Sequence record: OP752703.1
Direction: 5' to 3' (one strand)
DNA: 64,000 nucleotides
This document shows positions 3,684 to 24,108 of this stretch, piece by piece (the stretch's first letter is position 1; the number at the start of each line of letters is the position of its first letter). Both the position numbers and the translations under genes were made by a program. The notes under the pieces are model-generated. The model had not been told where the DNA came from, did no database searches, and saw only the letters and a program-made list of their open reading frames with translations.

Positions 3684-3752
3684 TTTAAAAAAGGGGTTGC
3701 AATCGTAACCCCTCCCCTGTATACTACACACATACCAACCAAGGATTAAAAC

Positions 3753-4028
3753 ATGGCTCGTCTCGTTACTGGTGTCGTTCGTATTGAAAAGCGTTCGGTA
3801 GCCAAGCGCTTCCGCTCCACTGACGGCAACATGTATCATTCGGCTCTAGGTGCCAATATCCAGCAGAAGGCAATCAACCGGGCGAACGCTGCACGGGATA
3901 TTTTCGACCGTCTCGGCCTGACCATGCCCAGCAATAAAAACGTGGTGAGCATCAATCGCCTGATCGGTGTTCTGCGCCACAACCCGAAGGAAGCTGCGAA
4001 GTTTATCAAGCTTTTGCAGGAAGCGTAA
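3753..4028 (+). CDS. Basic hypothetical protein
   Basis: Hairpin promoter and AAGGA. Confidence 0.85.
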   Translation: MARLVTGVVRIEKRSVAKRFRSTDGNMYHSALGANIQQKAINRANAARDIFDRLGLTMPSNKNVVSINRLIGVLRHNPKEAAKFIKLLQEA

Positions 4029-4100
4029 CTAAATAAAACTGGACAAACAAGAGGCAGGGGGCTACAATCTCCTGCCTCAACTACTTTAAAGGAATCCAAA

Positions 4101-4238
4101 ATGCACAACCCCGTACACAAGCACAGCAAAAACATTAACAAGCCCAAAACGCACCGTGATCGTAAGAACGATTACAAGCGCAAAGACCGCAATAACAGGA
4201 ATGGTTCGGATGGAAGTTCGGACCATTTTTGTTTCTAA
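4101..4238 (+). CDS. 45-aa basic peptide
   Basis: AAGGA RBS; MHNPVHKHSKNINKPKTHRDRK. Confidence 0.65.
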   Translation: MHNPVHKHSKNINKPKTHRDRKNDYKRKDRNNRNGSDGSSDHFCF

Positions 4239-4299
4239 AGTGCTTGCATTCCTTTAAAGTCTGTCCTATACTACACGCACACTTTAAAGGAATACAAGC

Positions 4300-4587
4300 A
4301 TGCTTGATGAAGAATTTGGTTTTGAATTTGGTATTGGATTGGAGTTCGTTTCTCCTGCTGAATCCCTGCGCTACAGGGTTAATAAGCTCGAAACCATTCG
4401 TAACAAAATGCTTGAATGCTTGGAAAGCGCCAATGATGACCTTGCATCCATCGGGGTAGAATTGCAGTTCAATACTGCCATTGCGCATCCGTCCTACGAA
4501 ATCCATCTGATTGACGATCTTATCACAAAGCTGTCGGCTGAATTGGCAATCGAATCTCGCAAAGAAAAGCTTGCACAATCCGTTTAA
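4300..4587 (+). CDS. Acidic hypothetical protein
   Basis: TATACT-ACACGCAC and AAGGA. Confidence 0.8.
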   Translation: MLDEEFGFEFGIGLEFVSPAESLRYRVNKLETIRNKMLECLESANDDLASIGVELQFNTAIAHPSYEIHLIDDLITKLSAELAIESRKEKLAQSV

Positions 4588-4629
4588 ACCTGTATACTAC
4601 ACACATCAACCAACAACACGGAGTTAGCC

Positions 4630-5004
4630 ATGACCCTCAGCATCGCCACCGTCGAACGTCGCTTCACTTCCTTTGACGTGTACCTGAACGATAAGCTGAT
4701 CGACACCACTTTCCACCAAGGCGAGACGGTCGAGGATCAGAAGCGCTCGCTGATCGACCATGACGGCTATGATTCGGAAATCGAAGTCTACGGCGTGGCC
4801 GAATCGGTTCTCCCGCTGACAAAAAAGGAAATGCGTACCCTGCTGGAAGACGTGGGCGGCGAAGTGTTTCAGGACGTGGTGAGCTGGCATTGGCGCGATG
4901 ACACGGGCGCAAGCCTGCCGTTCCAGACCGAAAGCGATGCACTGGCCGATGCCGTCGAATCGCTGGGACTGGACACCAAGGGTATCGAGGATACCCGCCA
5001 GTAA
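4630..5004 (+). CDS. Hypothetical phage protein
   Basis: Cassette promoter; KRSLIDHDGY segment. Confidence 0.85.
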   Translation: MTLSIATVERRFTSFDVYLNDKLIDTTFHQGETVEDQKRSLIDHDGYDSEIEVYGVAESVLPLTKKEMRTLLEDVGGEVFQDVVSWHWRDDTGASLPFQTESDALADAVESLGLDTKGIEDTRQ

Positions 5005-5075
5005 AAAGATTTAAAAGGGGGTTGCAAAAGATCGTAACCCCCTGTATACTACACGCACACCACAAGGAAATCGCA

Positions 5076-5387
5076 ATGGACGTTGAAGCCCGCATTCGTG
5101 AATTCGCCGCCAAGCTGGAAGACTACTGCAATGCCGACCAGCCGGATTACCTGCAACAAAAGGTGACGATCATCACTGGCAAGAAGTATGTAAAGATTGC
5201 CATTGGTTATGTCAAGAGTGAAGGCCGCAGCGTCTATTGTTTCATTGACCAGAGCAACGGCGATATTTACAAGGCCGCAAGCTGGAAGGCCCCGGCCAAG
5301 GGTGTGCGCGGTTCGATCTTTAACGATAACTGCGACGTGGGTGACGACAAGCCCTGCAATCGATTCGGGAGCGGATTGTACCGCTAA
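5076..5387 (+). CDS. Conserved phage protein (GKKYxKI...GDIYKAASWKAPAK type)
   Basis: Motif recalled from many large phages; start moved to 5076. Confidence 0.8.
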   Translation: MDVEARIREFAAKLEDYCNADQPDYLQQKVTIITGKKYVKIAIGYVKSEGRSVYCFIDQSNGDIYKAASWKAPAKGVRGSIFNDNCDVGDDKPCNRFGSGLYR

Positions 5388-5427
5388 AACAGTTGACATA
5401 GGGTTCAAGTAGAATTAAACTGAACAC

Positions 5428-5649
5428 CTAACGTAATCCCATCAACGAGAAACGATACCACTAAGGGGGTTGGAAAGTATGTAACGGTTAAACTTAATTT
5501 TACTCTATCTTATTAAATTAATCTTGTATACTTAAACGCAACACCGTAACATTGTAAACCACGTTAGCAGCAGGGAGCGCCCATAAAAGCAACGCTAACA
5601 TAACATCGTAAACCACGGCCCGCTAGTGAGTTCACCTAGCGGGCTTTTT
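5428..5649 (+). ncRNA. Candidate non-coding RNA of about 220 nt
   Basis: TTGACA(5393)-17-TAAACT(5416); no usable ORF; terminator 5618-5649. Confidence 0.55.
5618..5649 (+). terminator. Intrinsic terminator
   Basis: GCCCGCTAG-N9-CTAGCGGGC-TTTTT. Confidence 0.88.
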
Positions 5650-5783
5650 CGTGTCTAATCAATGACTTAGCGGGATATATCCCCGGCCTACCATCCATTT
5701 TACAGCAAATATAATTTAATGCAAGGGGTTGCAATGAAATAAAATAGGCGTATACTACACACATACCAACAACGGAGCTACAC

Positions 5784-6008
5784 ATGAACACCATTCGCGT
5801 CGATACCAACAATGCCAAGTGCGCCCCGTGCGGGATGAATTCGATTCGCTATATCGGTGACAACATGGCTGCGGCCCGTCGCGCTTTCGACAATGCTACG
5901 GTCGGCATTGATGCGTGGGGTAAGGCTAATCCGGCCTATGGTATCGTCCTGTCGAAGTGGGATCGATCCAAAAACGATTATGTGGTGATTGATAGCAAGG
6001 GCTTGTAA
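5784..6008 (+). CDS. Hypothetical early protein
   Basis: Cassette promoter and GGAG. Confidence 0.85.
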   Translation: MNTIRVDTNNAKCAPCGMNSIRYIGDNMAAARRAFDNATVGIDAWGKANPAYGIVLSKWDRSKNDYVVIDSKGL

Positions 6009-6057
6009 TTCTCAAAGACTGCTGTATACTACACACATACCAACCACGGAGTTACAC

Positions 6058-6162
6058 ATGAACAACCAAGGCACCCTTGAAGAACGTTACGCGATCTATC
6101 TGGCCTGCGCAAAGGATTTGGGTTGGCAGATCAAGACTTTCGATGAATGGTTGAATAGTTGA
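6058..6162 (+). CDS. 34-aa peptide
   Basis: Cassette promoter and GGAG; stop inside next TTGACA. Confidence 0.7.
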   Translation: MNNQGTLEERYAIYLACAKDLGWQIKTFDEWLNS

Positions 6163-6216
6163 CACAAGCCAAAATCCTGTTATACTAACCACACACACAC
6201 TAACAAGGAAGCACGA

Positions 6217-6984
6217 ATGCCCATCACCGATAACGCTACTGTCATTCTCACCGACGCGGACGGCAACCGTTTCCGCGCAAGCATGGAACAGGCCAACGCA
6301 CTGGCCGCAATGGAACAGGCCAACAAGGGTGGCTTTGCTACCATCATCGGTTATCAGCCGTCAAGCGACTACGTGGTTAAGCCGCTGCACGATTATCAGG
6401 TCATCACCCGTTTTGACTATGGTCGCCTGAACAACCGTAAGCGCGATGCACTGGAAGGTATCACGTGGAATCAGGTTAAGGATGAAATTCTGGCCCTGCC
6501 CAAGGTGATCGAACTGGTCAAGGCCAAGGGTGAAGAACACGTGCGCGGCATTTTCAACGAACGCAAGGCAAAGGAACTGGACAGCATCCACGTTTCGGCA
6601 ATGGGCGACCGTTCCGATGCACACCGACAGGGCCATGATCGTTGCTATGGCCGCATTGTCGAAGGTGTCCGCGTTCATTACAAGACTGAAAAGGTTGACG
6701 GCATCATGCAGCCGGTGTTCACTGATGGACTGCCTACCGCTGATTCCATCATGTTGAACGTGCTGATCCTGAGCCGTAACGTGCGTGAACCGGGTGAACG
6801 TAAGGTAGTGAACAGCGGCGTTCCAGTGCTTATCTCCAACGTCCTGAAAAAGCAGATGAACAGCCGCAGCGTGGGTTTCAAGGCACTGAGCTTGAAGCCG
6901 GGCAATTTTGAAGAAGTGCGTATGGGCGGTGTCACCCTGAACGAAGCTGACACGGCCCGACTCGGCGACCTGCTGATTCTGTAA
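6217..6984 (+). CDS. Hypothetical early protein
   Basis: 255 aa, cassette promoter, AAGGA. Confidence 0.88.
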   Translation: MPITDNATVILTDADGNRFRASMEQANALAAMEQANKGGFATIIGYQPSSDYVVKPLHDYQVITRFDYGRLNNRKRDALEGITWNQVKDEILALPKVIELVKAKGEEHVRGIFNERKAKELDSIHVSAMGDRSDAHRQGHDRCYGRIVEGVRVHYKTEKVDGIMQPVFTDGLPTADSIMLNVLILSRNVREPGERKVVNSGVPVLISNVLKKQMNSRSVGFKALSLKPGNFEEVRMGGVTLNEADTARLGDLLIL

Positions 6985-7003
6985 CCGATCAGCCTAACAG
7001 AAA

Positions 7004-7027
7004 GCCCTAGAGAAATCTAGGGCTTTT
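7004..7027 (+). terminator. Intrinsic terminator, identical to 12879-12902
   Basis: GCCCTAGA-GAAA-TCTAGGGC-TTTT. Confidence 0.88.
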
Positions 7028-7099
7028 TTAATTCAAAAAGTGCTTGACAGGGCATTACCTAGGCCCCATAATACACGCATCAACTACGGAGCAAACCAC

Positions 7100-7408
7100 A
7101 TGCGCAAGATTGAAGCCCAACTGATCGAAGCAATCCGCCAGAATCGTGAGTGGTCCAGTGGTAACACTACCTTTGCCGGTGGCCTTGTCCTGCTGCACGG
7201 TCACGTGATCGCCCGCAAGGATGGAAGCATCTGGCAGATCAATCTCCAAGGTTGGAACACCGCCACCACCCGTTCCCGTCTTACTGCCATTCTGTCGGAA
7301 CTGGTTGGCACCGCATTCAGTGTGACCACAAAGAATGGGCAGGCTTATATCAACTATCGTAACGGTTTCAGCAAGGCCATTGCCAGCGAAGGTTGGCACA
7401 GTGTCTAA
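7100..7408 (+). CDS. Conserved phage protein (GWNTxTTRSRL type)
   Basis: Cassette promoter; start moved to 7100. Confidence 0.8.
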   Translation: MRKIEAQLIEAIRQNREWSSGNTTFAGGLVLLHGHVIARKDGSIWQINLQGWNTATTRSRLTAILSELVGTAFSVTTKNGQAYINYRNGFSKAIASEGWHSV

Positions 7409-7541
7409 CGAATCGGTATGGACAATCAAGGTATGGGACGGCTTTTCTAGCCGTTCCTTCACCCGAAGGGGGACGTATGGAGCGCTGGCTCAGGCGTATA
7501 TCTACAATGCCCCGCCCGGATATATTGTCAGCATTAGTTGA
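7401..7541 (+). CDS. Small hypothetical protein (GTG start)
   Basis: Fills gap; stop inside next TTGACA. Confidence 0.5.
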   Translation: MSNESVWTIKVWDGFSSRSFTRRGTYGALAQAYIYNAPPGYIVSIS

Positions 7542-7594
7542 CAATCCCTAAAATCCCTGTATACTACACACATACCAACCACATGAGGCACACC

Positions 7595-7822
7595 ATGGCA
7601 CGTTATATGCGATCCAATCTGGAACAGGAAATCGAAGCCATCAATCAGACTGGCGGACGCAATGGCCGAACCACCTATCTAAAGGTGCAGGCCCGCAATG
7701 GTTACACTGCCATTGACGAATATAGCGTAAGGCAAGGTGGTGGTGCAATCTGCCTGCGCAATATCCAGTGCGGAACGCCGCGTGAATGTCGTGAAAGTGC
7801 GATGGAATGGGCCGCAAATTAA
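7595..7822 (+). CDS. Hypothetical early protein
   Basis: Cassette promoter, GAGG RBS. Confidence 0.8.
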   Translation: MARYMRSNLEQEIEAINQTGGRNGRTTYLKVQARNGYTAIDEYSVRQGGGAICLRNIQCGTPRECRESAMEWAAN

Positions 7823-7883
7823 AGTTTGCATCCTGATCTAACTACTGTATACTAACCACACACAACAAACAAAGGGTAACACG

Positions 7884-8264
7884 ATGACCTCTCCCAACGT
7901 AATTCCGGGTTTCAAGAAGCTGAGTAAGCAGCGCATTTTTAATAAGGCAGTAGCTCACATTGCCGTCACCCGTCAACTTTCCGTTCGTGATGGGGGTTGC
8001 GTTTATGGTGGGTCTGGCTGTAACGCTGCACCGCTGCTGACCCCCGACGGTCGTGCGCTTGCGGATAGTGTCGGTAGTTGGCAATATCTCGTAGAAACGG
8101 GGTTTGTCCCCTCCAATAATGCCGAATTCATCGAGGAATTGCAGGAAGCTCACGATTCCGTGCGTATCGCACAGGATTTCATGCCAACGTGGAAAGAGAA
8201 CATGGCGGCTCTCGCAAAGCGCTGGAACCTGTCCACTTCCACCCTTGACAAGGTGCCTGCCTAA
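7884..8264 (+). CDS. Hypothetical phage protein with CxY..C and LQxAHD motifs
   Basis: Cassette promoter. Confidence 0.82.
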   Translation: MTSPNVIPGFKKLSKQRIFNKAVAHIAVTRQLSVRDGGCVYGGSGCNAAPLLTPDGRALADSVGSWQYLVETGFVPSNNAEFIEELQEAHDSVRIAQDFMPTWKENMAALAKRWNLSTSTLDKVPA

Positions 8265-8476
8265 TGGACGTTCAGAAGTTCCGCAAGATTCATGCCAAGT
8301 ACGAACAGGGCGACCGTCTGACCGATGCCGAACTGAAAACCCTGCTGGCATTTTATGACGATCTTGTCAAGGTGCTTGACACGGCCTATCTGCCCATGTT
8401 CACCCTGACTCAGCGCGAAGCATGGCAGAATCAGCGCCGTCTACGTTACATGCAGGAAGCCCGACAGGGCAAGTGA
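8264..8476 (+). CDS. Hypothetical protein
   Basis: TAATG coupling. Confidence 0.8.
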   Translation: MDVQKFRKIHAKYEQGDRLTDAELKTLLAFYDDLVKVLDTAYLPMFTLTQREAWQNQRRLRYMQEARQGK

Positions 8477-8556
8477 AAATAGTTTAAAAAAGGGGTTGCA
8501 TCCCGTAACCCCTTTCTGTATACTACACACATCAACCAACAACACGGAGCAACACC

Positions 8557-8724
8557 ATGGATTACCGCATCTACACCGTCGCCATCATGCTGGGTAACAA
8601 GATTGTGAAGGAAATCCACAACGTGTTCGCGCAGAATCGTGACCAAGCGATTGCCAATGCATGGCAGTCGAATGCAGCCCAGCCGTACCGCGATGGTAAG
8701 CACGAAGCCAAGGCGTATGCCTAA
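8557..8724 (+). CDS. 55-aa hypothetical protein
   Basis: Hairpin promoter and GGAG; not in ORF track. Confidence 0.75.
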   Translation: MDYRIYTVAIMLGNKIVKEIHNVFAQNRDQAIANAWQSNAAQPYRDGKHEAKAYA

Positions 8725-9089
8725 TGCGAGTCTATCGGATTCAGGACGCTAACAACCTAGGTCCGATGCACTACCTTAGCACCATTCGCCGCAACGTCAT
8801 CCATCACAAAGACCCCAGCGAAATGCAAGCCACTAAGGGTGGCGTACCGATCTACCCACAAATCGGTGGCAGTGCAGCCCGTTTCGGTTGGGATTCCCTC
8901 GAAAAGATTTGCGGATTCATCAAGTATCCGCGCTCTGTAGACGAAGCGGGTTATACCGTGGTAGTCTATGAAGTGGATGCAGACGAATGCGTATTGTATC
9001 CCGATGGTCAAGTGTTTTTCTACCCCTCCAAGGCTGAAAAGGTAGATGAATTTCTTTACAGCCAAGCGCTTGCAAAGCTGTTAGCATGA
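8724..9089 (+). CDS. Hypothetical protein (VYRI...GP N-terminus)
   Basis: TAATG coupling. Confidence 0.8.
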   Translation: MRVYRIQDANNLGPMHYLSTIRRNVIHHKDPSEMQATKGGVPIYPQIGGSAARFGWDSLEKICGFIKYPRSVDEAGYTVVVYEVDADECVLYPDGQVFFYPSKAEKVDEFLYSQALAKLLA

Positions 9090-9124
9090 CGCTATAATAC
9101 CCACACACCAACAAGGATTAACAA

Positions 9125-9691: not shown

Positions 9692-9741
9692 TATACAGAA
9701 AGGGGTTGACAGAAATGTCAGCCCCTTTTACACTTACACGC

Positions 9742-10062
9742 ATGAAAGAACACCCCCTCGACCCCCTCTGTAAACCCATTAAGAAAGGCTGGAATTGTCC
9801 CCATTGTGGCGAAAAGCCCAAGGGAGTACAGACCTACAATGGCGAAAAATGGATGACAGAAGGCAGATATTACCTCGCCCCTCATACCTGTAAGGGTGGA
9901 ACCATGATCGGTGGATTCAACTACACCGTATGGGATTGCCTGCACGAATATTGGGGGCCATGGGTTAAGGCACAACGCAAGATCATCGATAACCCTCCCC
10001 CTGTTGTCAAGCCTGTTGTTAAGAAAAGTTTTTGGCAAAAGCTCTTGACAGGCTGGAACTAA
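9742..10062 (+). CDS. Cys/His-containing hypothetical protein, probably leaderless
   Basis: TTGACA-17-TACACT-N7-ATG; CPHC motif. Confidence 0.75.
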   Translation: MKEHPLDPLCKPIKKGWNCPHCGEKPKGVQTYNGEKWMTEGRYYLAPHTCKGGTMIGGFNYTVWDCLHEYWGPWVKAQRKIIDNPPPVVKPVVKKSFWQKLLTGWN

Positions 10063-10733: not shown

Positions 10734-10745
10734 TATAGTACACGC

Positions 10746-10961
10746 ATGAAGCACACGAACGAACAGCGTAACAAGTGGGGCCGTCACGACGCAATCAATT
10801 CCGTCACGATGGCCAACCCCATCCACAACAACTGGCGTTCGCCCTCTGGTGTGTTGCGTCATTATGATGCTGCATACGTTGATGGTTATGTCAAGGCATG
10901 GAAAGCCAAAACGGGCGAAACCCTCACGATTCTCATTGACCACTGGAACCCCAATGTCTGA
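10746..10961 (+). CDS. Hypothetical protein, probably leaderless
   Basis: TTGCAG-17-TATAGT-ACACGC-ATG. Confidence 0.75.
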   Translation: MKHTNEQRNKWGRHDAINSVTMANPIHNNWRSPSGVLRHYDAAYVDGYVKAWKAKTGETLTILIDHWNPNV

Positions 10962-11512: not shown

Positions 11513-11585
11513 AAAGATTTAAAAAGGGGTTGCCAAGTGCAGCCCCTTTTGTTATAGTACACGCATCAACTACGGAGACGTATAC

Positions 11586-12042: not shown

Positions 12043-12112
12043 GTTTTAAAAAGGGGTTGCAATTCATTTCAACCCCTGTATACTGACCACACACACCAAC
12101 GGAGCTACTGAA

Positions 12113-12270: not shown

Positions 12271-12870
12271 ATGATTAGCCTGAAAGAATACAATAATATC
12301 TGCACCCTCCTGAACTATCTGCGTGAGCAGTTGCATACACCGCTGGGTGACAAGTATTATCATGGCAGTTACAACACCTGTAGCATTGGCTTCGCTGCTA
12401 TTTCGGGGAAGTTCCCCTCACTGCCGATGACCGTCGAATACTACGAAAGCGGTTTGTGGAATCTCAAATATAAGGGCAATGCTGAGAATCACTCTCGCGC
12501 TGTGTTCGGTGACGATTACACAAGGCACGTTGCACTGCCCTACAATGACGTGATTATGGGTCGCCCCGAAGGAAAGAAGCAGTTGTCCTATGTCATTGAA
12601 AAGATTGAAAATCTCCTGATCGCTAATGACTATGCGGTCCCTGCTGCGACACCTGTCAAGGCGGCAAAGGTGCCGAAGGTGCCGAAGGTGAAGCAGCCGA
12701 AGGCCCCGAACCCTGCCACTGCTGGAAAGCGTATTGAAGCACGCATTGCCCGCATGGAAAAGGTCAAGGCTGACATTGCAAAGCTGGGCGTAGACGCAAA
12801 GCACTTCACCGTCAACGTTCAGAGCATGGATGCACAAATCGCCGCACTGCGTGATGCCCTCGCATCGTAA
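12271..12870 (+). CDS. Paralog family A, member 1
   Basis: YxH..CSIGFA, FGxDY, C-terminal coiled coil. Confidence 0.88.
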   Translation: MISLKEYNNICTLLNYLREQLHTPLGDKYYHGSYNTCSIGFAAISGKFPSLPMTVEYYESGLWNLKYKGNAENHSRAVFGDDYTRHVALPYNDVIMGRPEGKKQLSYVIEKIENLLIANDYAVPAATPVKAAKVPKVPKVKQPKAPNPATAGKRIEARIARMEKVKADIAKLGVDAKHFTVNVQSMDAQIAALRDALAS

Positions 12871-12878
12871 CACGAAAG

Positions 12879-12902
12879 GCCCTAGAGAAATCTAGGGCTT
12901 TT
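12879..12902 (+). terminator. Intrinsic terminator, identical to 7004-7027
   Basis: GCCCTAGA-GAAA-TCTAGGGC-TTTT. Confidence 0.88.
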
Positions 12903-12962
12903 CTCTTGCACATTCCCTAGAGTGTGTGTATACTAAACCCATACCAACCAATGGAGCTAACC

Positions 12963-14177: not shown

Positions 14178-14377
14178 TGGCTACCCGTATTGAACTGTTT
14201 GAACAGGCTCTAGATGATTTTGGTGAAACCGTCTATTTCTATGTGGACGGCTCATATATCCGCCGTGATGCTGGTAATGGCATGTGGCGTTTGTATGACA
14301 CCAATAATAAGAATATTGACAACGATCAATATCGACATGACCTGATGGAGCGTAACGGATTGCAGTTCCCGTATTAA
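14177..14377 (+). CDS. Hypothetical protein
   Basis: TAATG coupling. Confidence 0.78.
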   Translation: MATRIELFEQALDDFGETVYFYVDGSYIRRDAGNGMWRLYDTNNKNIDNDQYRHDLMERNGLQFPY

Positions 14378-14410
14378 AACGCGAACCCGTTACTTTAATG
14401 ATAGAAGACC

Positions 14411-14446
14411 CAAACTCCCCAAGTCAATAGATTTGGGGAGCAAAAT
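14411..14446. repeat. 36-bp element identical to 17954-17989; hairpin containing an antisense -35
   Basis: CAAACTCCCCAAGTCAATAGATTTGGGGAGCAAAAT. Confidence 0.9.
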
Positions 14447-14527
14447 TATTTTAAATTATTTGCTGAAAAGTGTTGACAGCCCCTCCGAATCTGTCTAATA
14501 TACACACATCAACCACGGAGACACACC

Positions 14528-14752: not shown

Positions 14753-14820
14753 TTCAACAAAGGGGGTTGTGCAAGAGTGCAACCCCCTGTATACTACACA
14801 CATCAACTACGGAGCTAACC

Positions 14821-15042: not shown

Positions 15043-15102
15043 TTGACAGGGGAGAAATCCCCTGTTATCATACACACAACAACCCCAATCAAAGGCCATT
15101 AA

Positions 15103-15720
15103 ATGACCACTCGCGTACTGAAAGCCAACCCGACCCAGCGCAAGAACATTGCAAAGCTGGTATCGTATCTGACCCAGCAGCTTGCCGCGAAGGACAAGAC
15201 TTACAATCATAGCAACGTGGCCGCATGCACGATTGGCTTTGCCATCAAATCGGGGCTATTTGAACCGCTGAACCGCTACAGCATCAGCACTGGCCGATTC
15301 GGTGAGCCGAACGTTCATCATGCAGGCCGCAACCCCTTCACCACCGCTGTCGTGTCCGAAGTCATCATGAAGGGCCTGTTTGGCAGTGATTACGTGAATG
15401 AAATCGTGTTCCCCGGTCGTCGTGGAGTGGACAGCGATTTCCAGCCGTTCGGCAAAAAGGGCCTTAGCGCTCTGCGCTATGTCATCAAGCATATCACCAA
15501 GGTGTACGAACTGGATGCCCCGGCCCCCGCTGGCGTGGTTGCTGCCAAGGTCGAAGCCGACAACATCCGTGCGAAGGTTACTGCCCGTGTGGCCGAATTG
15601 GAAGAACTGGTAAAGGCGTGCAAAGTGGTTTACAAGCATAGCCCGCTGGACACCGTGAAGCAAACCAAGGACGCAGCCGCTACCGAACTACTGATCCTGA
15701 AAAATCTGCTGGAAAAGTAA
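15103..15720 (+). CDS. Paralog family A, member 2
   Basis: YNHS..CTIGFA, LFGSDY. Confidence 0.88.
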   Translation: MTTRVLKANPTQRKNIAKLVSYLTQQLAAKDKTYNHSNVAACTIGFAIKSGLFEPLNRYSISTGRFGEPNVHHAGRNPFTTAVVSEVIMKGLFGSDYVNEIVFPGRRGVDSDFQPFGKKGLSALRYVIKHITKVYELDAPAPAGVVAAKVEADNIRAKVTARVAELEELVKACKVVYKHSPLDTVKQTKDAAATELLILKNLLEK

Positions 15721-15784
15721 TGAAAAGGGGTTGCAGAAATGCAGCCCCTTTGCTATTATACACACATCAACTACGGAGCGAGCC

Positions 15785-16212: not shown

Positions 16213-16773
16213 ATGAAGCGTGCACGAATTACCGACAATCAGCGTTTCCAGATCACCAAGCTGGTGCAAGTGCTGACCGAACTACGTGACACTCCCGAAG
16301 CCGCGAAGTATGACCATTCCGACGTGAATACCTGCACCATCGGTTTTGCGGTCAAGTCGGGGCAGTTTGAATTCCTGAACAAGCATATTGACGTAACGCC
16401 CGCTGGTCATCCGATTGTGCGCGAAGATAGTATCTATTCCTACATGAGTATCAGCGCCATTGCCGCCAAGCTCTTTGGTTCTGATTACGACAATAATGTG
16501 GTGTTCGGCGGTGGCGAGTCGGGCATCTTCGCAGTCCCGGTCGGTGTGGAACAGCTTGATTTCATTATTAAGTTCATCGTCAATCGCTACAAGATCGAAG
16601 TTACTGCACCGAAGCCAGATGCAACCAAGATCAAGGTTCAGGCCGCGATTGACGAAAATGTCAAGCTGATTGAAGCATGTAACGTGGTGCTTGCCAAGGG
16701 CAACATTGCAAGCGTGGTGGAACGCCGTGATACGGCTATCAATGAAAACGTCCTGTTGCGACAGTTCGTGTAA
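16213..16773 (+). CDS. Paralog family A, member 3
   Basis: YDHS..CTIGFA, LFGSDY. Confidence 0.88.
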   Translation: MKRARITDNQRFQITKLVQVLTELRDTPEAAKYDHSDVNTCTIGFAVKSGQFEFLNKHIDVTPAGHPIVREDSIYSYMSISAIAAKLFGSDYDNNVVFGGGESGIFAVPVGVEQLDFIIKFIVNRYKIEVTAPKPDATKIKVQAAIDENVKLIEACNVVLAKGNIASVVERRDTAINENVLLRQFV

Positions 16774-16845
16774 TTAGTTTTAAAAAGGGGTTGCCAAGTG
16801 CAGCCCCTTTTTGTTATAGTACACGCATCAACCACGGAGATATAC

Positions 16846-17298: not shown

Positions 17299-17369
17299 AG
17301 TTTTAAAAAGGGGTTGCCAAGTGCAGCCCCTTTTGTTATAGTACACACATCAACCACGGAGCGCCCGCC

Positions 17370-17639
17370 ATGCTGAACATGACCTTTGAAGAAGCCAAGG
17401 CCCACGCAAACGAACTGTACGCCAAGCTCAATGAATGCAGTGCTGCCCTGAACAAATACCCGAAGGGCGATATGGGCATGGTGGCCGAATCCATCCGCAT
17501 GACCCCCGAATACAAGGCAGAAACCGCTGCATTCCGTAAGGTGTTCGAGGAACTGCGCCAGTTTAACACGGTGTATGTCAAGCAATTCAAAAAAGAATTG
17601 CGTGAGGAACGTGCAAAGAAATACGCACAAACCCCTTGA
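17370..17639 (+). CDS. Helical hypothetical protein
   Basis: Hairpin promoter; stop in TTGACA. Confidence 0.85.
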   Translation: MLNMTFEEAKAHANELYAKLNECSAALNKYPKGDMGMVAESIRMTPEYKAETAAFRKVFEELRQFNTVYVKQFKKELREERAKKYAQTP

Positions 17640-17689
17640 CAGGGGACGCGCTGTACTCTACTATACACGCATCAACCACGGAGCAAGCC

Positions 17690-17917: not shown

Positions 17918-17953
17918 AAAAGCGCCAGATCGTTACCACCATTGTGACATACA

Positions 17954-17989
17954 CAAACTCCCCAAGTCAATAGATTTGGGGAGCAAAAT
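17954..17989. repeat. 36-bp element identical to 14411-14446
   Basis: Direct comparison. Confidence 0.9.
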
Positions 17990-18071
17990 AATTTAAAAAA
18001 AGTGTTGACAAGAGTCCATAAGGGGCGTATTCTACACACATCAAGTCAACACCAACCCAACGGAGCAACCC

Positions 18072-18363: not shown

Positions 18364-18392
18364 ATTTTATATTATAATTTAGCGCGAGTCAA
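18364..18392 (-). promoter_or_regulatory. Antisense sigma70-like promoter
   Basis: TTGACT-17-TAAAAT on - strand. Confidence 0.7.
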
Positions 18393-18471
18393 CAACAAAA
18401 TTAATTAAAATAATGCTTGACAAGTCGCGCGCTGTACCCTAATATACACACATCAACCACGGAGACACACC

Positions 18472-18708: not shown

Positions 18709-18777
18709 TCAGCCAAGGGGGTTGACAATCCAGTCAGCCCCCTTTACTATACACACATCAACCACGGAGACGCACAC

Positions 18778-18984
18778 ATGAAGTTTCTGGATTTTGGCGG
18801 CGAACCGATCAACGTCAAGCTGGCTGCGCAGTTCACCTACAAGGGCCTGACCATTTCCGCCTCCACCATCTTCACCCCCTACGCCTCCATTGCCATTCTG
18901 GATGCTGAGGGTGAATTCCTCGCTACCGATCTGAACAGCGTGGAAGAAGCCATCGCCCTGATCGACAATGGCACGGTGGGTTGA
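18778..18984 (+). CDS. Hypothetical early protein
   Basis: Hairpin promoter; stop in TTGACA. Confidence 0.85.
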   Translation: MKFLDFGGEPINVKLAAQFTYKGLTISASTIFTPYASIAILDAEGEFLATDLNSVEEAIALIDNGTVG

Positions 18985-19038
18985 CACAAACCCACTGACC
19001 AGTTAAACTAACACACATCCACTCACCATAGGAACACC

Positions 19039-19662
19039 ATGACCGCTATCCTGCTATCCGCCACCCCGACCCAGCGTAAAAACCTGCTGCAACTGGTCGG
19101 CTACCTCATGTCGATTCAGAACACGCCCAAGGCTGATGAATACGACCATAGCGACGAAGAACGCTGCACTTTCGGCTTCGCTGTCCTGAGCAAAAAGATC
19201 AAGGCTCTGAACGCACGTTTCATGGTTACTGGCGTGGGCCGAAGCTATGTGAAGCGTGCCAAATACAACGGTATCGCTTTATCCGAACTGGCTAATGCTG
19301 TGTTCGGTAAGGACTACTGGTCACGAATCGTTTACGGCCCGTATACCAGCAGCAGCGCACGCGCCTTCGCGGAAATCAAAGACCTTCCGAAGGGCCGCGA
19401 GCAGATGAATTTCATCATCAACGCCATGATTTCCGCATACAAGATGACCCCGGAAGAACTGGCCCCGTACAAGGAAAGTGTCACCATCATCACCAATGAA
19501 GTGGACACGACCCGTAATCGCATTCTGGACCGCATTACCAAGCTGGAAGCTTTCGTGAACTACGCCAGTGCGTTTGATAATGATGACACCATCAAGCTGA
19601 CCCAGCAAGTGCAGGCCGCACAGGCTGACATTAAGGCGCTGAAACGCGCACTGTCCCTGTAA
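19039..19662 (+). CDS. Paralog family A, member 4
   Basis: YDHS..CTFGFA, VFGKDY. Confidence 0.88.
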   Translation: MTAILLSATPTQRKNLLQLVGYLMSIQNTPKADEYDHSDEERCTFGFAVLSKKIKALNARFMVTGVGRSYVKRAKYNGIALSELANAVFGKDYWSRIVYGPYTSSSARAFAEIKDLPKGREQMNFIINAMISAYKMTPEELAPYKESVTIITNEVDTTRNRILDRITKLEAFVNYASAFDNDDTIKLTQQVQAAQADIKALKRALSL

Positions 19663-19734
19663 TTAGTTTAAAAAGGGGGTTGCAGAAATGCAGCCCCTTT
19701 GCTATTCTACACACATCAACTACGGAGACGCATC

Positions 19735-19923
19735 ATGTTCGCAGCTACCAGTTCCAAAGTAATCGACCAGTGGGGTGATGGCAGGTATGGTGCTGTCTTC
19801 TGGCGTACTGATCGCCGCGACGTGTGGTATTGCTATGACGGCCATTACAGCTATCAGGCTGTGGTGGATGAATTCGGCAACCTGATCTGTATCTCTCACT
19901 ACACCAATGAGGCAGGTTACTAA
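19735..19923 (+). CDS. Hypothetical early protein
   Basis: Hairpin promoter and GGAG. Confidence 0.8.
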   Translation: MFAATSSKVIDQWGDGRYGAVFWRTDRRDVWYCYDGHYSYQAVVDEFGNLICISHYTNEAGY

Positions 19924-20075
19924 TGTGTACCTCTGACTGTAACTATCTGAACTGCTGTGACTGTGGTGGCAATGGCTGCGGTTGCTCTGGCTGCTGGTCC
20001 TGTCAAGCCTGTGAAGAATGCAAGTGGGAAAATGGCGAGTGTGATGATTGTAAGGAGGAATCCGATGGAGTTTGA
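19923..20075 (+). CDS. 50-aa Cys-rich metallothionein-like peptide
   Basis: MCTSDCNYLNCCDCGGNGCGCSGCWSCQACEECKWENGECDDCKEESDGV; TAATG coupling; not in track. Confidence 0.72.
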   Translation: MCTSDCNYLNCCDCGGNGCGCSGCWSCQACEECKWENGECDDCKEESDGV

Positions 20076-20325
20076 ATTCCAGACAATCCACCGCGTCTGT
20101 TTCAGTTGCACCACGAACGGCGATGCAGCAGACGACTACAATGATGCCCTTGTGAGGCTCGCAAAGCAATTCAGTACAGTCTACTTCAATAACGATAGCC
20201 GTTACATGTGGAAATGGTGCTGGATTTTTGAGTGCGAAAACAGGGACACCCTGAACGAAATTCTTAAAGCGGCAACCGTCCTAGCAGACATGCAAGGGGT
20301 TGTACTCACCAACGAACTAGGCTAA
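20065..20325 (+). CDS. Hypothetical protein (start moved from 19957)
   Basis: AAGGAGG RBS before ATG 20065. Confidence 0.78.
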   Translation: MEFEFQTIHRVCFSCTTNGDAADDYNDALVRLAKQFSTVYFNNDSRYMWKWCWIFECENRDTLNEILKAATVLADMQGVVLTNELG

Positions 20326-20354
20326 GATACACACATCAACCACGGAGACATACC

Positions 20355-20708
20355 ATGTTCGCTATCGTGATGCTTGGCAAGAACAACGAAATCCGCTCCT
20401 TCGCATACTATGACCCCGACTGTGGTCACATGATGAGCCGCTACACCACTCCCGGTTCTGGTCTGGTCGGTGCAAAGTTCTTCCCCACCCGTGAAGCTGC
20501 GCAGACTGTGTATGATGGAATGCGTAAGGAACGCGTGAACGAATACAGCGACGGTTCCACCACTCCCCCGATGCACATCTGGCAGGGCCTCCAAATCTGC
20601 AACGACAATCCGAAGGATGAAGGCACTTTTGCCATTGTCGAACTGTCGTGGGCCGTGGTCGAATCCGTACATGTGCAGGGGGAATTGACCTCCTGCAAAC
20701 ATCGCTAA
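20355..20708 (+). CDS. Hypothetical early protein
   Basis: Cassette leader and GGAG. Confidence 0.82.
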   Translation: MFAIVMLGKNNEIRSFAYYDPDCGHMMSRYTTPGSGLVGAKFFPTREAAQTVYDGMRKERVNEYSDGSTTPPMHIWQGLQICNDNPKDEGTFAIVELSWAVVESVHVQGELTSCKHR

Positions 20709-20720
20709 GGAGCTTAACAT

Positions 20721-20927
20721 ATGTTTTACAAATTCATTGACGCCCTGTGGTCGTTCGGCCTGCGCTGGTTCCCGCCACTCATGGTGCTGAATTTCATACT
20801 CTGCACGCACAAGATTGTGGTAGACGGCTTTAAGGTCAGCCATGTGGTGCTGTGGATTCTGGCTGTATTCTATCTCACCATGTGGTGTGATCGTAACTCC
20901 GAATTCATAAAAGAAATGGAGAAATAA
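20721..20927 (+). CDS. Two-helix membrane protein
   Basis: AAGGAG RBS; two hydrophobic segments. Confidence 0.78.
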   Translation: MFYKFIDALWSFGLRWFPPLMVLNFILCTHKIVVDGFKVSHVVLWILAVFYLTMWCDRNSEFIKEMEK

Positions 20928-21007
20928 TCGCTCAAAAGTGTTGACGGGTGGGCGGTAACTCTTTAATATACACACATCGAGTCACCACCCACCCAACGGA
21001 GAACACC

Positions 21008-21280
21008 ATGAGCAACGTCACCAACTTCCTCGCCAACGTCGCCGCTGCTGAGAAGATTGTGCAGGCCAACCACAAGGCTAGCTGGGATTGGGCCGCTTCT
21101 GATCGTGCCACCCGTGGCCCCTCCCCGCGTCTGGAAAAGGGTGCTGATACTGTGACCATGGGCAACGTCTCCTGCAAGCTGTCTGCCCCCGCTCAGAATG
21201 CTCGCACCAACGCCTGCCGCCGCAACTGGAAGATCAACGGCAAGCGTGCAACTGAGGCGGAAGCTCTGGCCGCACTCTAA
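21008..21280 (+). CDS. Ala-rich basic hypothetical protein
   Basis: Cassette promoter and GGAG. Confidence 0.83.
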   Translation: MSNVTNFLANVAAAEKIVQANHKASWDWAASDRATRGPSPRLEKGADTVTMGNVSCKLSAPAQNARTNACRRNWKINGKRATEAEALAAL

Positions 21281-21350
21281 ATCTTAAAAAAGGGGGTTGG
21301 CAAGAGCCAGCCCCCTTGCTATACTACACACACCATCAACGGAAACCATC

Positions 21351-21725
21351 ATGAGCGCTCACACCATCCCCACCACCCCCGTCGAAGTGCTGGATCGTAC
21401 CATCGCCCTGCTGTCCGACCCCGCCAACTGGACTACTGACTACTTCGCACGTAATGCAAAGGGTCAGGACGTTGACGTTCGTTCGCCCGATGCTACCTGT
21501 TTCTGCATCATGGGCGCAATTGAGCGTGTCACCCGTGGACCGGAAAATGGCGAGCGCGTCACGATGGAACAAATCCATACCGAATGTGATGCGGAAGCCG
21601 CATTGCAGACCATTCTAACCAAGCGCATTGGTGATTCCAACATCGCCAATTTCAACGACTCGGCAAGCCATGAACAGGTGATCGAAGCCCTGACCGAAGC
21701 AAGGGATAGCATCAAAAGGGCTTGA
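21351..21725 (+). CDS. DUF6197-like protein, copy 1
   Basis: NWT...CFCIMGAI...NFND...VIEAL. Confidence 0.65.
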   Translation: MSAHTIPTTPVEVLDRTIALLSDPANWTTDYFARNAKGQDVDVRSPDATCFCIMGAIERVTRGPENGERVTMEQIHTECDAEAALQTILTKRIGDSNIANFNDSASHEQVIEALTEARDSIKRA

Positions 21726-21775
21726 CCCCCTTACCGCATACCCCTATAATACACACACCATCAACGGAAACCATC

Positions 21776-22243
21776 ATGAGCGCCATCGATAACCTGAACA
21801 CCAAGCCGGTCAAGGAAATTCTCACGAACGTTCGTGAGCGTTTCTCCAATCGCACCAACTGGCAAACCAGTTCCCTGAGCAATCACCGTGGTTGCATGTG
21901 CCTGCTGGGCGGTATGTCCGTGGCTGAGGGCATCGTCACTGCTGACGATTATATCAAACACTATAATGGAGAAACGGATAGCCTTACCATTGGCGAGTTC
22001 CCCAACCAAGCAGCCATCTACAAGGCCATGGCTGACAGTCGCGCACTGCAATTCCTGATGGATGACATTGCGACCGAAAACAAAAACATCGCTCTCGCCA
22101 TCGAGGCCGATAAGGATGGACTGCACTACGTAGACGCCGCATGGACCTTCAATGACGGCCATGACAGGCCCGGTGAGCGTGATAAGGAAAAGAGCTATAA
22201 CCGCGTGCTGGATGCTCTGGATCGAGCCATCGCAAAGGCTTGA
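21776..22243 (+). CDS. DUF6197-like protein, copy 2
   Basis: NWQ...CMCLLGG...TFND...VLDAL. Confidence 0.62.
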   Translation: MSAIDNLNTKPVKEILTNVRERFSNRTNWQTSSLSNHRGCMCLLGGMSVAEGIVTADDYIKHYNGETDSLTIGEFPNQAAIYKAMADSRALQFLMDDIATENKNIALAIEADKDGLHYVDAAWTFNDGHDRPGERDKEKSYNRVLDALDRAIAKA

Positions 22244-22295
22244 CCATCTGAAACAATGTGGGTATGATACACACATACCCACTCAGGCCATAACC

Positions 22296-22511
22296 ATGAA
22301 CAAAACCAAGGCGAACAAATTCCTAGAGGCCAAAGGCTTTGATATGGAAGTTGACAAGTTCGAGGGCATCTGGTTCATGGTCAACGCCTACAGGGGATAC
22401 GGTCAACCCATCCGTAGCACGGAAGGCTCTTGCATGAATATCGTTCGCATGAGTGATATGACTGAATCCGATCTGCTATACTACGCCAATAAACTCGCTA
22501 AGGAAGACTAA
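22296..22511 (+). CDS. Hypothetical early protein
   Basis: Cassette promoter. Confidence 0.78.
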   Translation: MNKTKANKFLEAKGFDMEVDKFEGIWFMVNAYRGYGQPIRSTEGSCMNIVRMSDMTESDLLYYANKLAKED

Positions 22512-22514
22512 GCC

Positions 22515-22715
22515 ATGAACCTACAGCAGCAGAATTTCCCGAAATACGTTATCGTACATAGCGAAATCGGTAACGAACTGACCAGTCCCTTGACTCTCGA
22601 AGAAGTCAACAACGGCTCACAGGCATATCCCGCCATCAAGGCCCGTTCCCTGCGCATCGGCGAAACCCTGAAAAGCACCCTCGACCATGATCGAGAAATT
22701 CGCCGCGTAAGCTAA
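22515..22715 (+). CDS. Hypothetical protein
   Basis: AAGGA upstream. Confidence 0.78.
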   Translation: MNLQQQNFPKYVIVHSEIGNELTSPLTLEEVNNGSQAYPAIKARSLRIGETLKSTLDHDREIRRVS

Positions 22716-22781
22716 AAAACACTTGACGATTACTCAGTGGGTATGTACTATACACATACCCACTCACTAAGGAGCTACGCC

Positions 22782-22991
22782 ATGAACAACCTCTACTGCG
22801 CAACCCACAAGGACGAAAACCTTGACTCGTTGCAGGGCGAGCGTTTGGATGCCATGACCGATCACATGGTCAAGCATAAGGCGTATGATTTCAACACCCT
22901 CAATGACTCCGCCAGTGGTAACTACGTCATTTGGGAAATGGTCCGTAAGGCAGACGGTCACTACTACTTCCACCATATCATGGGGCGATAA
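22782..22991 (+). CDS. Hypothetical early protein
   Basis: Cassette promoter and AAGGAG. Confidence 0.8.
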   Translation: MNNLYCATHKDENLDSLQGERLDAMTDHMVKHKAYDFNTLNDSASGNYVIWEMVRKADGHYYFHHIMGR

Positions 22992-23065
22992 TTCTTAAAA
23001 AGGGCTTGCCAAGTGCAAGCCCTTTTGCTATTCTACACACATACCCACTCACTAAGGAAACGACC

Positions 23066-23437
23066 ATGGAACTGCATCCGTCGATCACTCTCCCCTTCAT
23101 TGAGTACGTGTGCAAGTCCGTCCACAACAACGATACCGACGACCTCGCCAGCGACTACTGCGACCGCCATAAGGACGCCTATGGCATCAAGGCCCGTTGG
23201 GTGTTCTCCCGTACCTATACCGTCAATGAATGGCTCGTCATGTTCTCGGGCCTCGCCTACGCCATCGATGCAGAGTGCGAACGCGAGGAAGCCGAACAGA
23301 AAGCATTCATGGAACGTATCGCTTCCGTGGGCCTTACCGCATGGGCCGAGCGCAACAACATCCGCTCGGAATATGATCTGATGGAACACAACCAAATCAA
23401 TGAGTACAGGATGCTTGACCGTGGGGAAGTGCGCTAG
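23066..23437 (+). CDS. Phage protein (DxHKDAYGIKxR type)
   Basis: Hairpin promoter and AAGGA. Confidence 0.82.
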   Translation: MELHPSITLPFIEYVCKSVHNNDTDDLASDYCDRHKDAYGIKARWVFSRTYTVNEWLVMFSGLAYAIDAECEREEAEQKAFMERIASVGLTAWAERNNIRSEYDLMEHNQINEYRMLDRGEVR

Positions 23438-23468
23438 TATACTACACACACCATCACGGAAAACCATC

Positions 23469-23822
23469 ATGAACCAGATTAACCCTGAATTCGGACGTAA
23501 GCTGTTCGACGCCATGGCTGACACCCTCTATAAGGACCGTAGCCGACTGGCCTACATCATCACCGTGTCGCCCTCGCAGGCTAACACCCTCTACCTGCGC
23601 GCTACCCGTGACGTACAGTGTGCGCCCCTCCTGCATCATATCTCCAATGGCATGACCGCCGCAACCATCTGCATCCGCTATGAGGATATGGCTCTCCTGC
23701 GCACGGCCATCATTCAGGAGAATGACGCTACTCGACGCAACGGCCATACGCCAGCCCAGCACATGGTTGACATTGACACCATGCTTGCCATCGCATACCA
23801 GACAACTAACACCATCGACTAA
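23469..23822 (+). CDS. Hypothetical early protein
   Basis: Cassette promoter and CGGA. Confidence 0.8.
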   Translation: MNQINPEFGRKLFDAMADTLYKDRSRLAYIITVSPSQANTLYLRATRDVQCAPLLHHISNGMTAATICIRYEDMALLRTAIIQENDATRRNGHTPAQHMVDIDTMLAIAYQTTNTID

Positions 23823-23884
23823 ACCTCTTGCACCCTAGGGTATGTCCCTGTATACTACACACATACCCTCAAAGGAGATAACAC

Positions 23885-24052
23885 ATGAATGTAATGCACA
23901 ACATAGAGCGCATCAATGGCCGCTGGGTAGGCTATGACTCCAAGGGACAGGCCCACCGCATCAGTGGCAATACACATAGTGGATACATTGTAAAGGGTAA
24001 GTCGTTCAAGTATCTACGTAGTGTGTCAGAATACCTCTACACTGTAGCATAG
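23885..24052 (+). CDS. 55-aa protein, last cassette
   Basis: Cassette promoter and AAGGAG; not in track. Confidence 0.72.
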   Translation: MNVMHNIERINGRWVGYDSKGQAHRISGNTHSGYIVKGKSFKYLRSVSEYLYTVA

Positions 24053-24073
24053 CATACACACCACAGCTATGCA

Positions 24074-24108
24074 AGGGGTTGACATACACTCAGCCCCTAT
24101 GCTACCAT
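24074..24108 (+). promoter_or_regulatory. Orphan hairpin promoter with no downstream gene
   Basis: AGGGGTTGA-N7-TCAGCCCCT; TTGACA-18-TACCAT. Confidence 0.6.

Follow-up and report, generated by a model that had tools for sequence, protein, structure and literature searches.

Early promoters combined with a stem-loop in a compact intergenic cassette have been described in the T4-type phages RB49/phi1, T4/PST and KVP40/nt-1, and are known as promoter-early stem-loops (PeSLs) (Arbiol et al. 2010, PMC2839356; Comeau et al. 2014, PMC4122927). Here, a comparable element is reported from the left end of the genome of the Stenotrophomonas jumbo phage RAS14/CM1, analysed as a window of 64,000 nucleotides from sequence record OP752703.1. 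Its early genes are separated by small cassettes, and the evidence supports an apparent sharing of about 30–35 bp between a σ70-type promoter and a terminator-like RNA hairpin.

The PeSL is an intergenic cassette that begins at the upstream stop codon and ends at the ATG, with an A/T-rich tract, σ70-like –35/N17/–10 boxes and a Shine-Dalgarno sequence in between, and its stem-loop pairs a G-run with a C-run, G-T pairs included, in five positional subclasses, one of which overlaps the –35 box (PMC2839356, PMC4122927). PeSLs occur in many copies concentrated in ORFan-rich hyperplastic regions, and their recombination generates mini-circles and accounts for insertions and deletions (indels) between close relatives (PMC2839356, PMC4122927). 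In RB49/phi1, it was verified that the PeSLs are strong promoters and that the stem-loop, placed in a lacZ fusion, terminates transcription about as well as rrnB T1 (PMC2839356). The nt-1/KVP40 consensus, A3–4 G3 loop C3 T3–4 with TTGYVH-N17-TAWWAT (PMC2839356, PMC4122927), almost equals the sequence of the RAS14 cassettes, which likewise have σ70-like boxes about 17 bp apart, an A/T tract and a G-run/C-run stem-loop in variable registers, and which are also numerous and located in a hyperplastic region of hypothetical genes. On the other hand, RAS14 is an XacN1-like jumbo phage, outside the T4 subfamily, and the register with the –35 box in the 5′ arm is dominant in it, whereas in RB49/phi1 the stem-loop commonly lies between the boxes or over the –10. 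Moreover, recombination, mini-circles and terminator and promoter activity were demonstrated in T4-type phages, while the RAS14 cassettes are described here at the sequence level.

Rho-independent terminators that stand apart from the promoter, as in phage Xoo-sp13 and in parts of the RAS14 array itself, share with these cassettes a GC-rich stem of 8–14 bp, a loop of 4–8 nt and flanking A- and T-tracts, and both follow closely on a stop codon, on the coding strand. However, in the fused cassettes of RAS14 a promoter is superimposed: the stem takes in the –35, the U-tract extends into the –10, and six copies are devoid of a proper U-tract. Early regions made up of short hypothetical genes and dense σ70-type promoters preceded by an A-tract are also found in the Rak2-like phages CBB and Serratia phage BF, which are unrelated to RAS14 at the sequence level. 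The CBB paper reports RpoD-like early promoters with UP-like elements and lists terminators separately, leaving their fusion unmentioned (PMC5259590). In the literature, nothing was found on RAS14 or CM1, nor on the fused feature in XacN1, and the XacN1 paper does not discuss promoters or terminators.

Anatomy of the fused cassettes

Promoters were searched with a pattern anchored only on the –10 box and the conserved leader (ACACRCAT...GGAG, then ATG), which retrieved about 45–50 promoters on the + strand of the following array:

1–24100, + strand: early-gene array of about 70 small genes with 45–50 σ70-type promoters, leader ACACACATCAACYACGGAG, 49–52% GC

In a simple scan of 1–20 kb, 59 promoter-like sites were counted over both strands, mostly on the + strand, against 21 ± 6 in shuffles, and the + strand promoters each sit 25–30 nt ahead of an ATG. 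Sixteen of about 47 promoters carry a GC-rich hairpin with the –35 TTG within its 5′ arm and the promoter spacer as its 3′ arm. The original prediction had listed 15 of these, from 3691 to 24074; the hairpin was present at all of them, and a further copy at 18974–18997 had been overlooked. The arm pairs that it had quoted (GGGGTTGC/GTAACCCC, GGGGTTGC/GCAGCCCC, GGGCTTGC/GCAAGCCC, GGGGTTGAC/GTCAGCCCC and GGGGGTTGGC/GCCAGCCCCC) were correct, and the geometry that it had proposed, in which a 5′ arm containing the –35 pairs with the spacer, was found with 16–18 bp to the –10 at 15 copies. The 16 copies, all on the + strand, are as follows:

3692–3725, +: fused hairpin-promoter; stem 3692–3713, –35 TTGCAA at 3697, –10 TATACT at 3720, no T-run
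5016–5050, +: fused hairpin-promoter; stem 5016–5043, 8-nt loop, –35 at 5022, –10 at 5045, no T-run
8489–8524, +: fused hairpin-promoter; stem 8489–8515, –35 at 8496, –10 at 8519, TTTCTG tail
9698–9734, +: fused hairpin-promoter; 14-bp stem 9698–9729, –35 TTGACA at 9706, –10 TACACT at 9729, in-frame ATG at 9742
11522–11558, +: fused hairpin-promoter; stem 11522–11550, –35 TTGCCA at 11530, TTTTGT tail, –10 TATAGT
12052–12084, +: fused hairpin-promoter; core stem 12053–12076, –35 at 12057, 16-nt spacer, –10 at 12079, no T-run
14761–14795, +: fused hairpin-promoter; 12-bp stem 14761–14788, –35 TTGTGC at 14767, –10 at 14790, no T-run
15724–15759, +: fused hairpin-promoter; stem 15724–15751, –35 TTGCAG at 15731, TTTGC tail, –10 TATTAT
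16781–16820, +: fused hairpin-promoter; stem 16781–16813, –35 at 16791, 18-nt spacer, TTTTTGT tail, –10 TATAGT
17306–17342, +: fused hairpin-promoter; stem 17306–17334, –35 at 17314, –10 at 17337
18715–18750, +: fused hairpin-promoter; stem 18715–18744, –35 TTGACA at 18722, –10 TACTAT at 18745
18974–19009, +: fused hairpin-promoter, the 16th copy; stem 18974–18997, 5′ arm within the upstream coding sequence (CDS), –35 at 18981, –10 TAAACT at 19004
19673–19708, +: fused hairpin-promoter; stem 19673–19700, –35 at 19680, –10 TATTCT at 19703
21290–21325, +: fused hairpin-promoter; stem 21290–21317, –35 TTGGCA at 21297, –10 at 21320
22998–23034, +: fused hairpin-promoter with a GGGC/GCCC stem variant; stem 22998–23026, –35 at 23006, –10 TATTCT at 23029
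24074–24098, +: terminal hairpin ("half" cassette) closing the array at a convergent junction; TTGACA resembling a –35, not convincingly followed by a –10, leader or gene

The layout of the cassettes is uniform. An A/T-rich tract upstream of the –35 (mean of 4.8 A at –12 to –5; typically TTTAAAAA) is followed by 4–5 G, the –35 TTG, 1–5 further bases and a loop of 4–8 nt, with the 5′ arm running from the G onward; the 3′ arm then forms the initial part of the promoter spacer, and the –10 comes after it. Stems are continuous, with 8–14 bp and 4–8 GC pairs. In 15 copies the –10 has the form TAnnnT and is followed by the leader ACACRCAT...GGAG-ATG, and the spacing between the boxes is exactly 17 bp in 13 of these 15.

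Three promoters of the array (regions 1224–1239, 9729–9745 and 10734–10749) have an in-frame ATG 6–7 nt past the –10, at 1236, 9742 and 10746, and the genes starting there are probably leaderless. The annotated start at 9715, which lies inside the promoter hairpin, is probably wrong and would be replaced by 9742.

The hairpin and the upstream stop codon

About 30 promoters of the same family in the array have no hairpin, and the two classes differ in their relation to the upstream gene. In the hairpin class, the upstream stop codon lies 10–19 nt before the –35, the –10 is separated from the ATG by 25–32 nt, and the gaps from stop to ATG are mostly of 64–80 nt, whereas hairpin-less promoters either overlap the end of the upstream CDS or lie 50–340 nt away from it, in the latter case often behind a separate terminator hairpin. 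Thus, the presence of the hairpin follows the position of the upstream stop codon and not the type of gene. The hairpin class pays a visible price in its –35 box, since TTGACA occurs in 3/15 hairpin copies versus 15/31 hairpin-less promoters, and TTGC-type boxes are found in 10/15 hairpin copies.

It had been claimed that the promoter itself is a hairpin. This could not be maintained, given the hairpin-less members of the family and the phages Xoo-sp13 and XacN1, in which terminators are mostly separate or absent. Therefore, the hairpin is better regarded as an overlaid terminator than as a part of promoter recognition.

Stability, covariation and strand of the stem

Six representative hairpins folded at –14.7 to –23.5 kcal/mol (z = –4.6 to –7.1), values that none of 200 dinucleotide shuffles reached in any case, and a strict pattern gave 5 matches against 0.08 expected. 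The boxes keep their 17-bp distance although the loops differ in length, so that the position of the 3′ arm shifts against the –10; a MAFFT alignment of whole cassettes (A1) accordingly followed the promoter register and misplaced the 3′ arms. Hairpin cores were aligned instead, either those of the window (A2) or a pool from RAS14, XacN1, Serratia phage BF and Vibrio phage Va3 (A5).

In the window, 88.8% of the alignment cells were paired, two-sided changes occurred in 5/10 pairs, and the covariation score was 0.271 versus 0.139 in shuffles, 0/500 of which reached it, while slid controls gave at most 0.07. The modest size of this signal is due to the 5′ arm (GGGGTTG) being almost invariant. 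In the pooled alignment, 97.1% of cells were paired versus 77.8% in shuffles, cells with a two-sided change numbered 37 versus 9.9, and the score rose to 0.561 versus 0.258 (0/500), which bears out the earlier statement that the arms covary. All six pairs outside the TTG covary on both sides (e.g., GC, UA, AU, CG), whereas the pairs at the T, T and G of the –35 vary on the 3′ side only, with 25 U·G or G·U wobbles and not a single A·C. This pattern is that of two superimposed constraints, in which the promoter fixes the –35 and pairing in the + strand transcript is maintained with wobble tolerated.

The asymmetry between strands points in the same direction. All wobbles are G·U when read on the + strand; in 15/16 copies, RNA of this strand folds more stably than its – strand counterpart (by 2–6 kcal/mol in the folded examples); and the DNA palindrome is disrupted by G·T/A·C in 12/16. 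Selection on the top strand, as originally proposed, is supported by these wobbles and by a T-run that is specific to the hairpin class. Additionally, the first T of the –35 stands opposite G rather than A in 14 of the 28 hairpins pooled from the four phages. Unrelated phages share this U·G, which generic terminators with the same stem also show frequently, and its effect might be to keep the element one-directional or to prevent the DNA from being a perfect palindrome. The idea that the wobbles destroy a mirror-image –35 on the – strand gained no support from the one perfect-palindrome copy inspected by eye (12057), which has no –10-like hexamer at the right distance.

An inverted repeat over the –35 and spacer occupies the classic position of a repressor, and it could in principle be an operator for a dimeric DNA-binding protein of phage or host that silences a subset of early promoters. 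Half-site spacing is nevertheless variable, with loops of 4–8 nt, the distal stem covaries rather than being conserved, the DNA symmetry is broken in those 12 copies, and the hairpin tracks the upstream stop codon instead of the gene type, all of which makes an operator very improbable.

A folded DNA element was also considered, namely a cruciform, a single-stranded site resembling the attC sites of integrons, or a hairpin promoter like those of phage N4 acting during DNA entry; a recombination substrate of the attC kind and gating of transcription during injection had both been suggested for these stems. A GTTRRRY core, extrahelical bases and folding of the bottom strand characterise attC sites, and N4 virion-polymerase promoters consist of a 5–7 bp stem with a 3-nt loop, are read as single-stranded DNA and have no –35/–10 boxes. 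The RAS14 hairpins have in common with the former an inverted repeat tied to gene cassettes and with the latter one tied to promoters, and the mere existence of this repeat at a promoter is all that speaks for a folded DNA. However, both of these act as folded single-stranded DNA with defined cores and dedicated enzymes, while the RAS14 signal lies in the RNA of the transcript strand. No GTTRRRY core occurs in the RAS14 stems (GTTGCAA, GTTGACA and GTTGGCA do not fit), an integrase not having been searched for, and neither the bottom-strand fold nor the extrahelical bases were seen. N4 promoters differ by their short stems and loops from the 8–14 bp stems, 4–8 nt loops and canonical duplex σ70 boxes at 17 bp of RAS14, where a virion polymerase was not searched for. 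Furthermore, the – strand arm is less stable and contains A·C mismatches, and the same promoters occur hairpin-less. No feature of the data demands a single-stranded DNA stage, and such an element is scarcely tenable here.

Evidence for termination

The spacer contains TTT in 9/15 hairpin promoters versus 3/31 hairpin-less ones (Fisher p = 0.0006). A U-tract (TTT or longer, or TTGCT) follows the stem in 10/16 copies, in line with the T-run that had been noted as frequent. Because the T-run continues into the TGn and the T-rich –10, a 3′ end formed 7–9 nt past the stem would fall in or just before the –10. The earlier proposal that the upstream transcript ends at the next –10 is consistent with this prediction. 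The hairpin alone (AAGGGGTTGC...GCARCCCCTT) is an ordinary single terminator in 76 unrelated viral contigs. In viral contigs, the pattern of a hairpin bearing a –35 gave 100 strand matches; in 20 of these, to which a few recurring sequences contribute many, a TAnnnT hexamer lies at the distance typical of a promoter. In an Rfam search over 1–45 kb, no family was matched.

Three observations weigh against a terminator overlaid on the promoter. Firstly, 6/16 copies (3692, 5016, 12052, 14761, 18974 and 24074) have no T-run, their tails being TGTATACT or worse; these may be weak terminators, may have another role or may be merely protective 3′ hairpins. Secondly, a consensus terminator scan listed none of these hairpins, although the scan is uninformative here because pairing between the A-tract and the T-tract draws the T-run into the stem. 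Thirdly, covariation inside the single genome is modest, and some copies are recent duplicates or were converted, and are not independent.

The copies without a T-run, together with the placement of the hairpins directly after stop codons, would also be expected if the hairpin were an inefficient terminator and served the upstream mRNA instead, by stabilising its 3′ end against exonucleases or marking it for processing. Such a role taken alone is considered unlikely, since the association of the T-run with hairpin promoters is significant, these stems occur as ordinary terminators in the 76 viral contigs, and the PeSL stem-loop equalled rrnB T1 in the reporter (PMC2839356).

Proposed mechanism

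Taking this evidence together, it is likely that the intrinsic terminator of the upstream gene overlaps the σ70 promoter of the next gene, in a manner similar to PeSLs. Anatomy, pairing with its covariation, strand asymmetry, link to gene ends and recurrence in other phages were observed directly, and from them we infer termination, its efficiency and the polymerase that is used. Each composite cassette of about 65–75 nt occupies the entire gap between two early genes. On double-stranded DNA, it would act as an ordinary promoter of the host σ70 type, with A-tract, –35 (TTGNNN), 17-bp spacer, –10 (often with TGn), CA-rich G-poor leader, GGAG and ATG. In RNA made from the upstream promoter, the same bases would fold, the 4–5 G and the –35 becoming the 5′ arm and the spacer the 3′ arm, while the leftover T's of the spacer and the T-rich –10 would supply the U-tract. 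The hairpin would then be both an intrinsic terminator and a protective 3′ end for the upstream transcript. Since transcription would stop in or near the next –10 and restart there, units of one or two genes would be insulated from each other. Such a superposition would be affordable because σ70 reads the spacer mainly for its length, leaving it free to evolve complementarity to a fixed –35.

A further possibility is a polymerase relay, in which the core enzyme does not leave the DNA after releasing the upstream RNA at the –10 but is bound again by sigma in place, so that the superposition would be selected for this hand-over. We regard it as quite doubtful. If it were true, the array would keep scarce host polymerase on phage DNA in the first minutes of infection, and the recurrent U·G at the first –35 T would keep the element one-directional.

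Related phages and possible recombination

By protein similarity, the nearest phages are the Xanthomonas phages Xoo-sp13 and XacN1, whose homologous early arrays (– strand, 1–21 kb of Xoo-sp13 sequence L004 and 1–22 kb of XacN1 sequence L081) have the same promoter family and CA-rich leader; the right end of Xoo-sp13 (L003) has no early array. In Xoo-sp13, terminators lie upstream of the promoters and apart from them. Its early promoters (– strand of L004, e.g., 14817, 11672 and 15979) have an A/T-rich inverted repeat, ACTAAATTATAG ... TTATAATTTAGT, flanking the –35 instead of a GC hairpin. XacN1 has the fused design at 2 of about 34 promoters. The gene at 23066–23437 and XacN1 ORF002 are orthologs (58% identical), and a fused cassette precedes both (in RAS14 the copy at 22998–23034, orthologous to the XacN1 site), with stems GGGCTTGC/GCAAGCCC in RAS14 and GGGGTTGACA/TGTCAGCCCC in XacN1 that differ by compensatory changes, while the –10 and leader are conserved.

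The design also occurs in more distant phages. For a 12-kb early stretch of Serratia phage BF (Rak2-like), 21 promoter-like sites were listed, of which at least 12 are fused, with varied stems, and Vibrio phage Va3 (KVP40-type) has a copy with identical geometry, the U·G wobble and a CA-rich leader. The G-poor CA-rich 5′ leader (ACACACATCAACYACGGAG, 5–8 nt, ATG) is common to RAS14, XacN1 and Xoo-sp13, with one of similar type in Va3 (L084, 2584), and may be an unstructured, translation-enhancing leader. Searches for further relatives in viral contigs gave little: the exact pattern of –10 plus leader matched one unrelated contig of 36% GC and no relative, and the exact pattern of hairpin plus –35 matched the 76 contigs already mentioned, each with one generic terminator, and no relatives. 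A related-locus search with one early protein had no match, and a search with a three-sequence alignment gave one distant 317-kb contig (L083) with different promoters and no fused design.

The copies themselves suggest a history of exchange. Those at 15731 and 19680 are identical in 57/58 nt, although the paralogous genes preceding them are only about 30% identical as proteins, and those at 11530, 16791 and 17314 are nearly identical with unrelated flanks. Identity among copies is restricted to about 60 nt, loop included, which points to cassettes that were copied or converted independently of the genes. In addition, the early array appears hyperplastic, because only 11–13 of the 70 genes have homologs in XacN1 or Xoo-sp13, in scrambled order.

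These facts, as well as the mini-circles and indels documented for PeSLs in T4-type phages (PMC2839356, PMC4122927), would fit cassettes that serve mainly as portable homology for modular recombination of the PeSL type, by which genes are excised, duplicated or swapped with their signals, the hairpin being secondary. This remains a tentative possibility, judged rather less probable than otherwise, since it leaves unexplained the exclusively G·U wobbles, the covariation, the T-run and the dependence on stop codon position, and since the sole close pair, CM1 and RAS14, is essentially identical, so that no indel-bearing close relative is at hand. A role in recombination is plausible as an added consequence that coexists with the role of terminator.

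Other overlap registers

Terminators of the same array stand apart from the promoter, abut it, surround its –35 or –10 box, or lie in its spacer. The following sites depart from the dominant register:

15043–15071, +: variant register; hairpin 15044–15067 mainly in the spacer between –35 TTGACA and –10 TATCAT
17632–17664, +: variant register; –35 TTGACA in the loop of CCCC...GGGG, –10 at 17659
36295–36345, –: hairpin plus promoter; –35 TTTACG in the loop/3′ arm, extended –10 TATAAT at 36308–36303, at the head of a – strand array of tiny genes
44307–44347, +: symmetric terminator hairpin 44307–44333; –35 TTGACA in the loop/3′ arm, T-run, –10 TATAAT at 44342, early-type leader
57412–57449, +: hairpin plus promoter; hairpin 57412–57432, –35 TTGACA in the loop/3′ arm, –10 TACAAT
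1632–1662, 22258–22282 and 22736–22764: hairpins with the –10 in the loop, the spacer pairing with the transcribed leader
389–416, +: conventional terminator, 2 nt upstream of the –35 at 418
1764–1782, 6999–7028, 12874–12903, 14415–14440 and 17958–17983, +: abutting or separate terminators upstream of distant hairpin-less promoters

It had been stated that the same design recurs at 36303–36339 and 44308–44347. The overlap of hairpin and promoter exists at both, but not the register with the –35 in the 5′ arm: the first is on the – strand with its –35 in the loop/3′ arm (–16.5 kcal/mol on the – strand versus –7.2 on the +), and in the second, a symmetric hairpin, the loop contains the –35. In the hairpins with the –10 in the loop, the complete stem is possible only in read-through transcripts. 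Among the separate terminators, an 80-nt direct repeat (14376–14455 and 17919–17998, 78% identical) contains the hairpin CTCCCCAA...TTGGGGAG and an A/T-rich tract, and its copies precede the promoters at 14473 and 18005.

Genomic setting

By megablast, the 14–20 kb segment is 100% identical to phage CM1 and 99.8% to RAS14, both of about 319.5 kb and essentially without sequence difference between them. Positions 1–32 kb of the window correspond base for base to RAS14 positions 1–32000; therefore, the RAS14 annotation could be used directly, and in it all 70 genes of the early array are hypothetical. The GC content is 49–52% in the + strand array versus 38–44% in the remainder of the window, with an abrupt change at about 24000–24400, where the array closes with the promoterless hairpin opposite a convergent – strand array. 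The latter (24420–36300) has the opposite architecture, with about 50 back-to-back genes of 60–80 aa, stop and start codons that often overlap and very scarce promoter-like sites, and at its head stands the hairpin plus promoter of 36345–36295. Within the early array, a paralog family of four proteins of 186–207 aa, 28–35% identical, is encoded at 12271–12870, 15103–15720, 16213–16773 and 19039–19662. Further along, 45206–46480 encodes a PARP-like protein (phrog_23333) whose XacN1 and Xoo-sp13 counterparts (about 65% identity) bear the annotation poly(ADP-ribose) polymerase, and 56504–57424 a thymidylate synthase. No tRNA genes occur in the window, whereas many are present in the XacN1 terminal region.

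Significance

The probable stop-and-restart signal described here is of a kind already published for T4-type phages and is not a new principle (PMC2839356, PMC4122927); since both this principle and a probable part in gene shuffling are in print, no new question is opened. What is new is the fused cassette in a phage group where it was undescribed before. It shows a clean dual-coding signature, with the –35 bases frozen, their partners toggling between Watson-Crick and wobble pairs, and the remaining stem covarying on both sides. For annotation, the cassettes provide boundaries of transcription units for about 70 unannotated genes and a probable revision of at least one start codon (9742 for 9715), and for synthetic biology they offer natural 70-nt units that would combine terminator, promoter, leader and ribosome-binding site. 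Finally, the PeSL-type design appears as the main organising signal of early arrays in at least two further groups of giant phages, the XacN1-like phages of Xanthomonadaceae and the Rak2-like Serratia phage BF.

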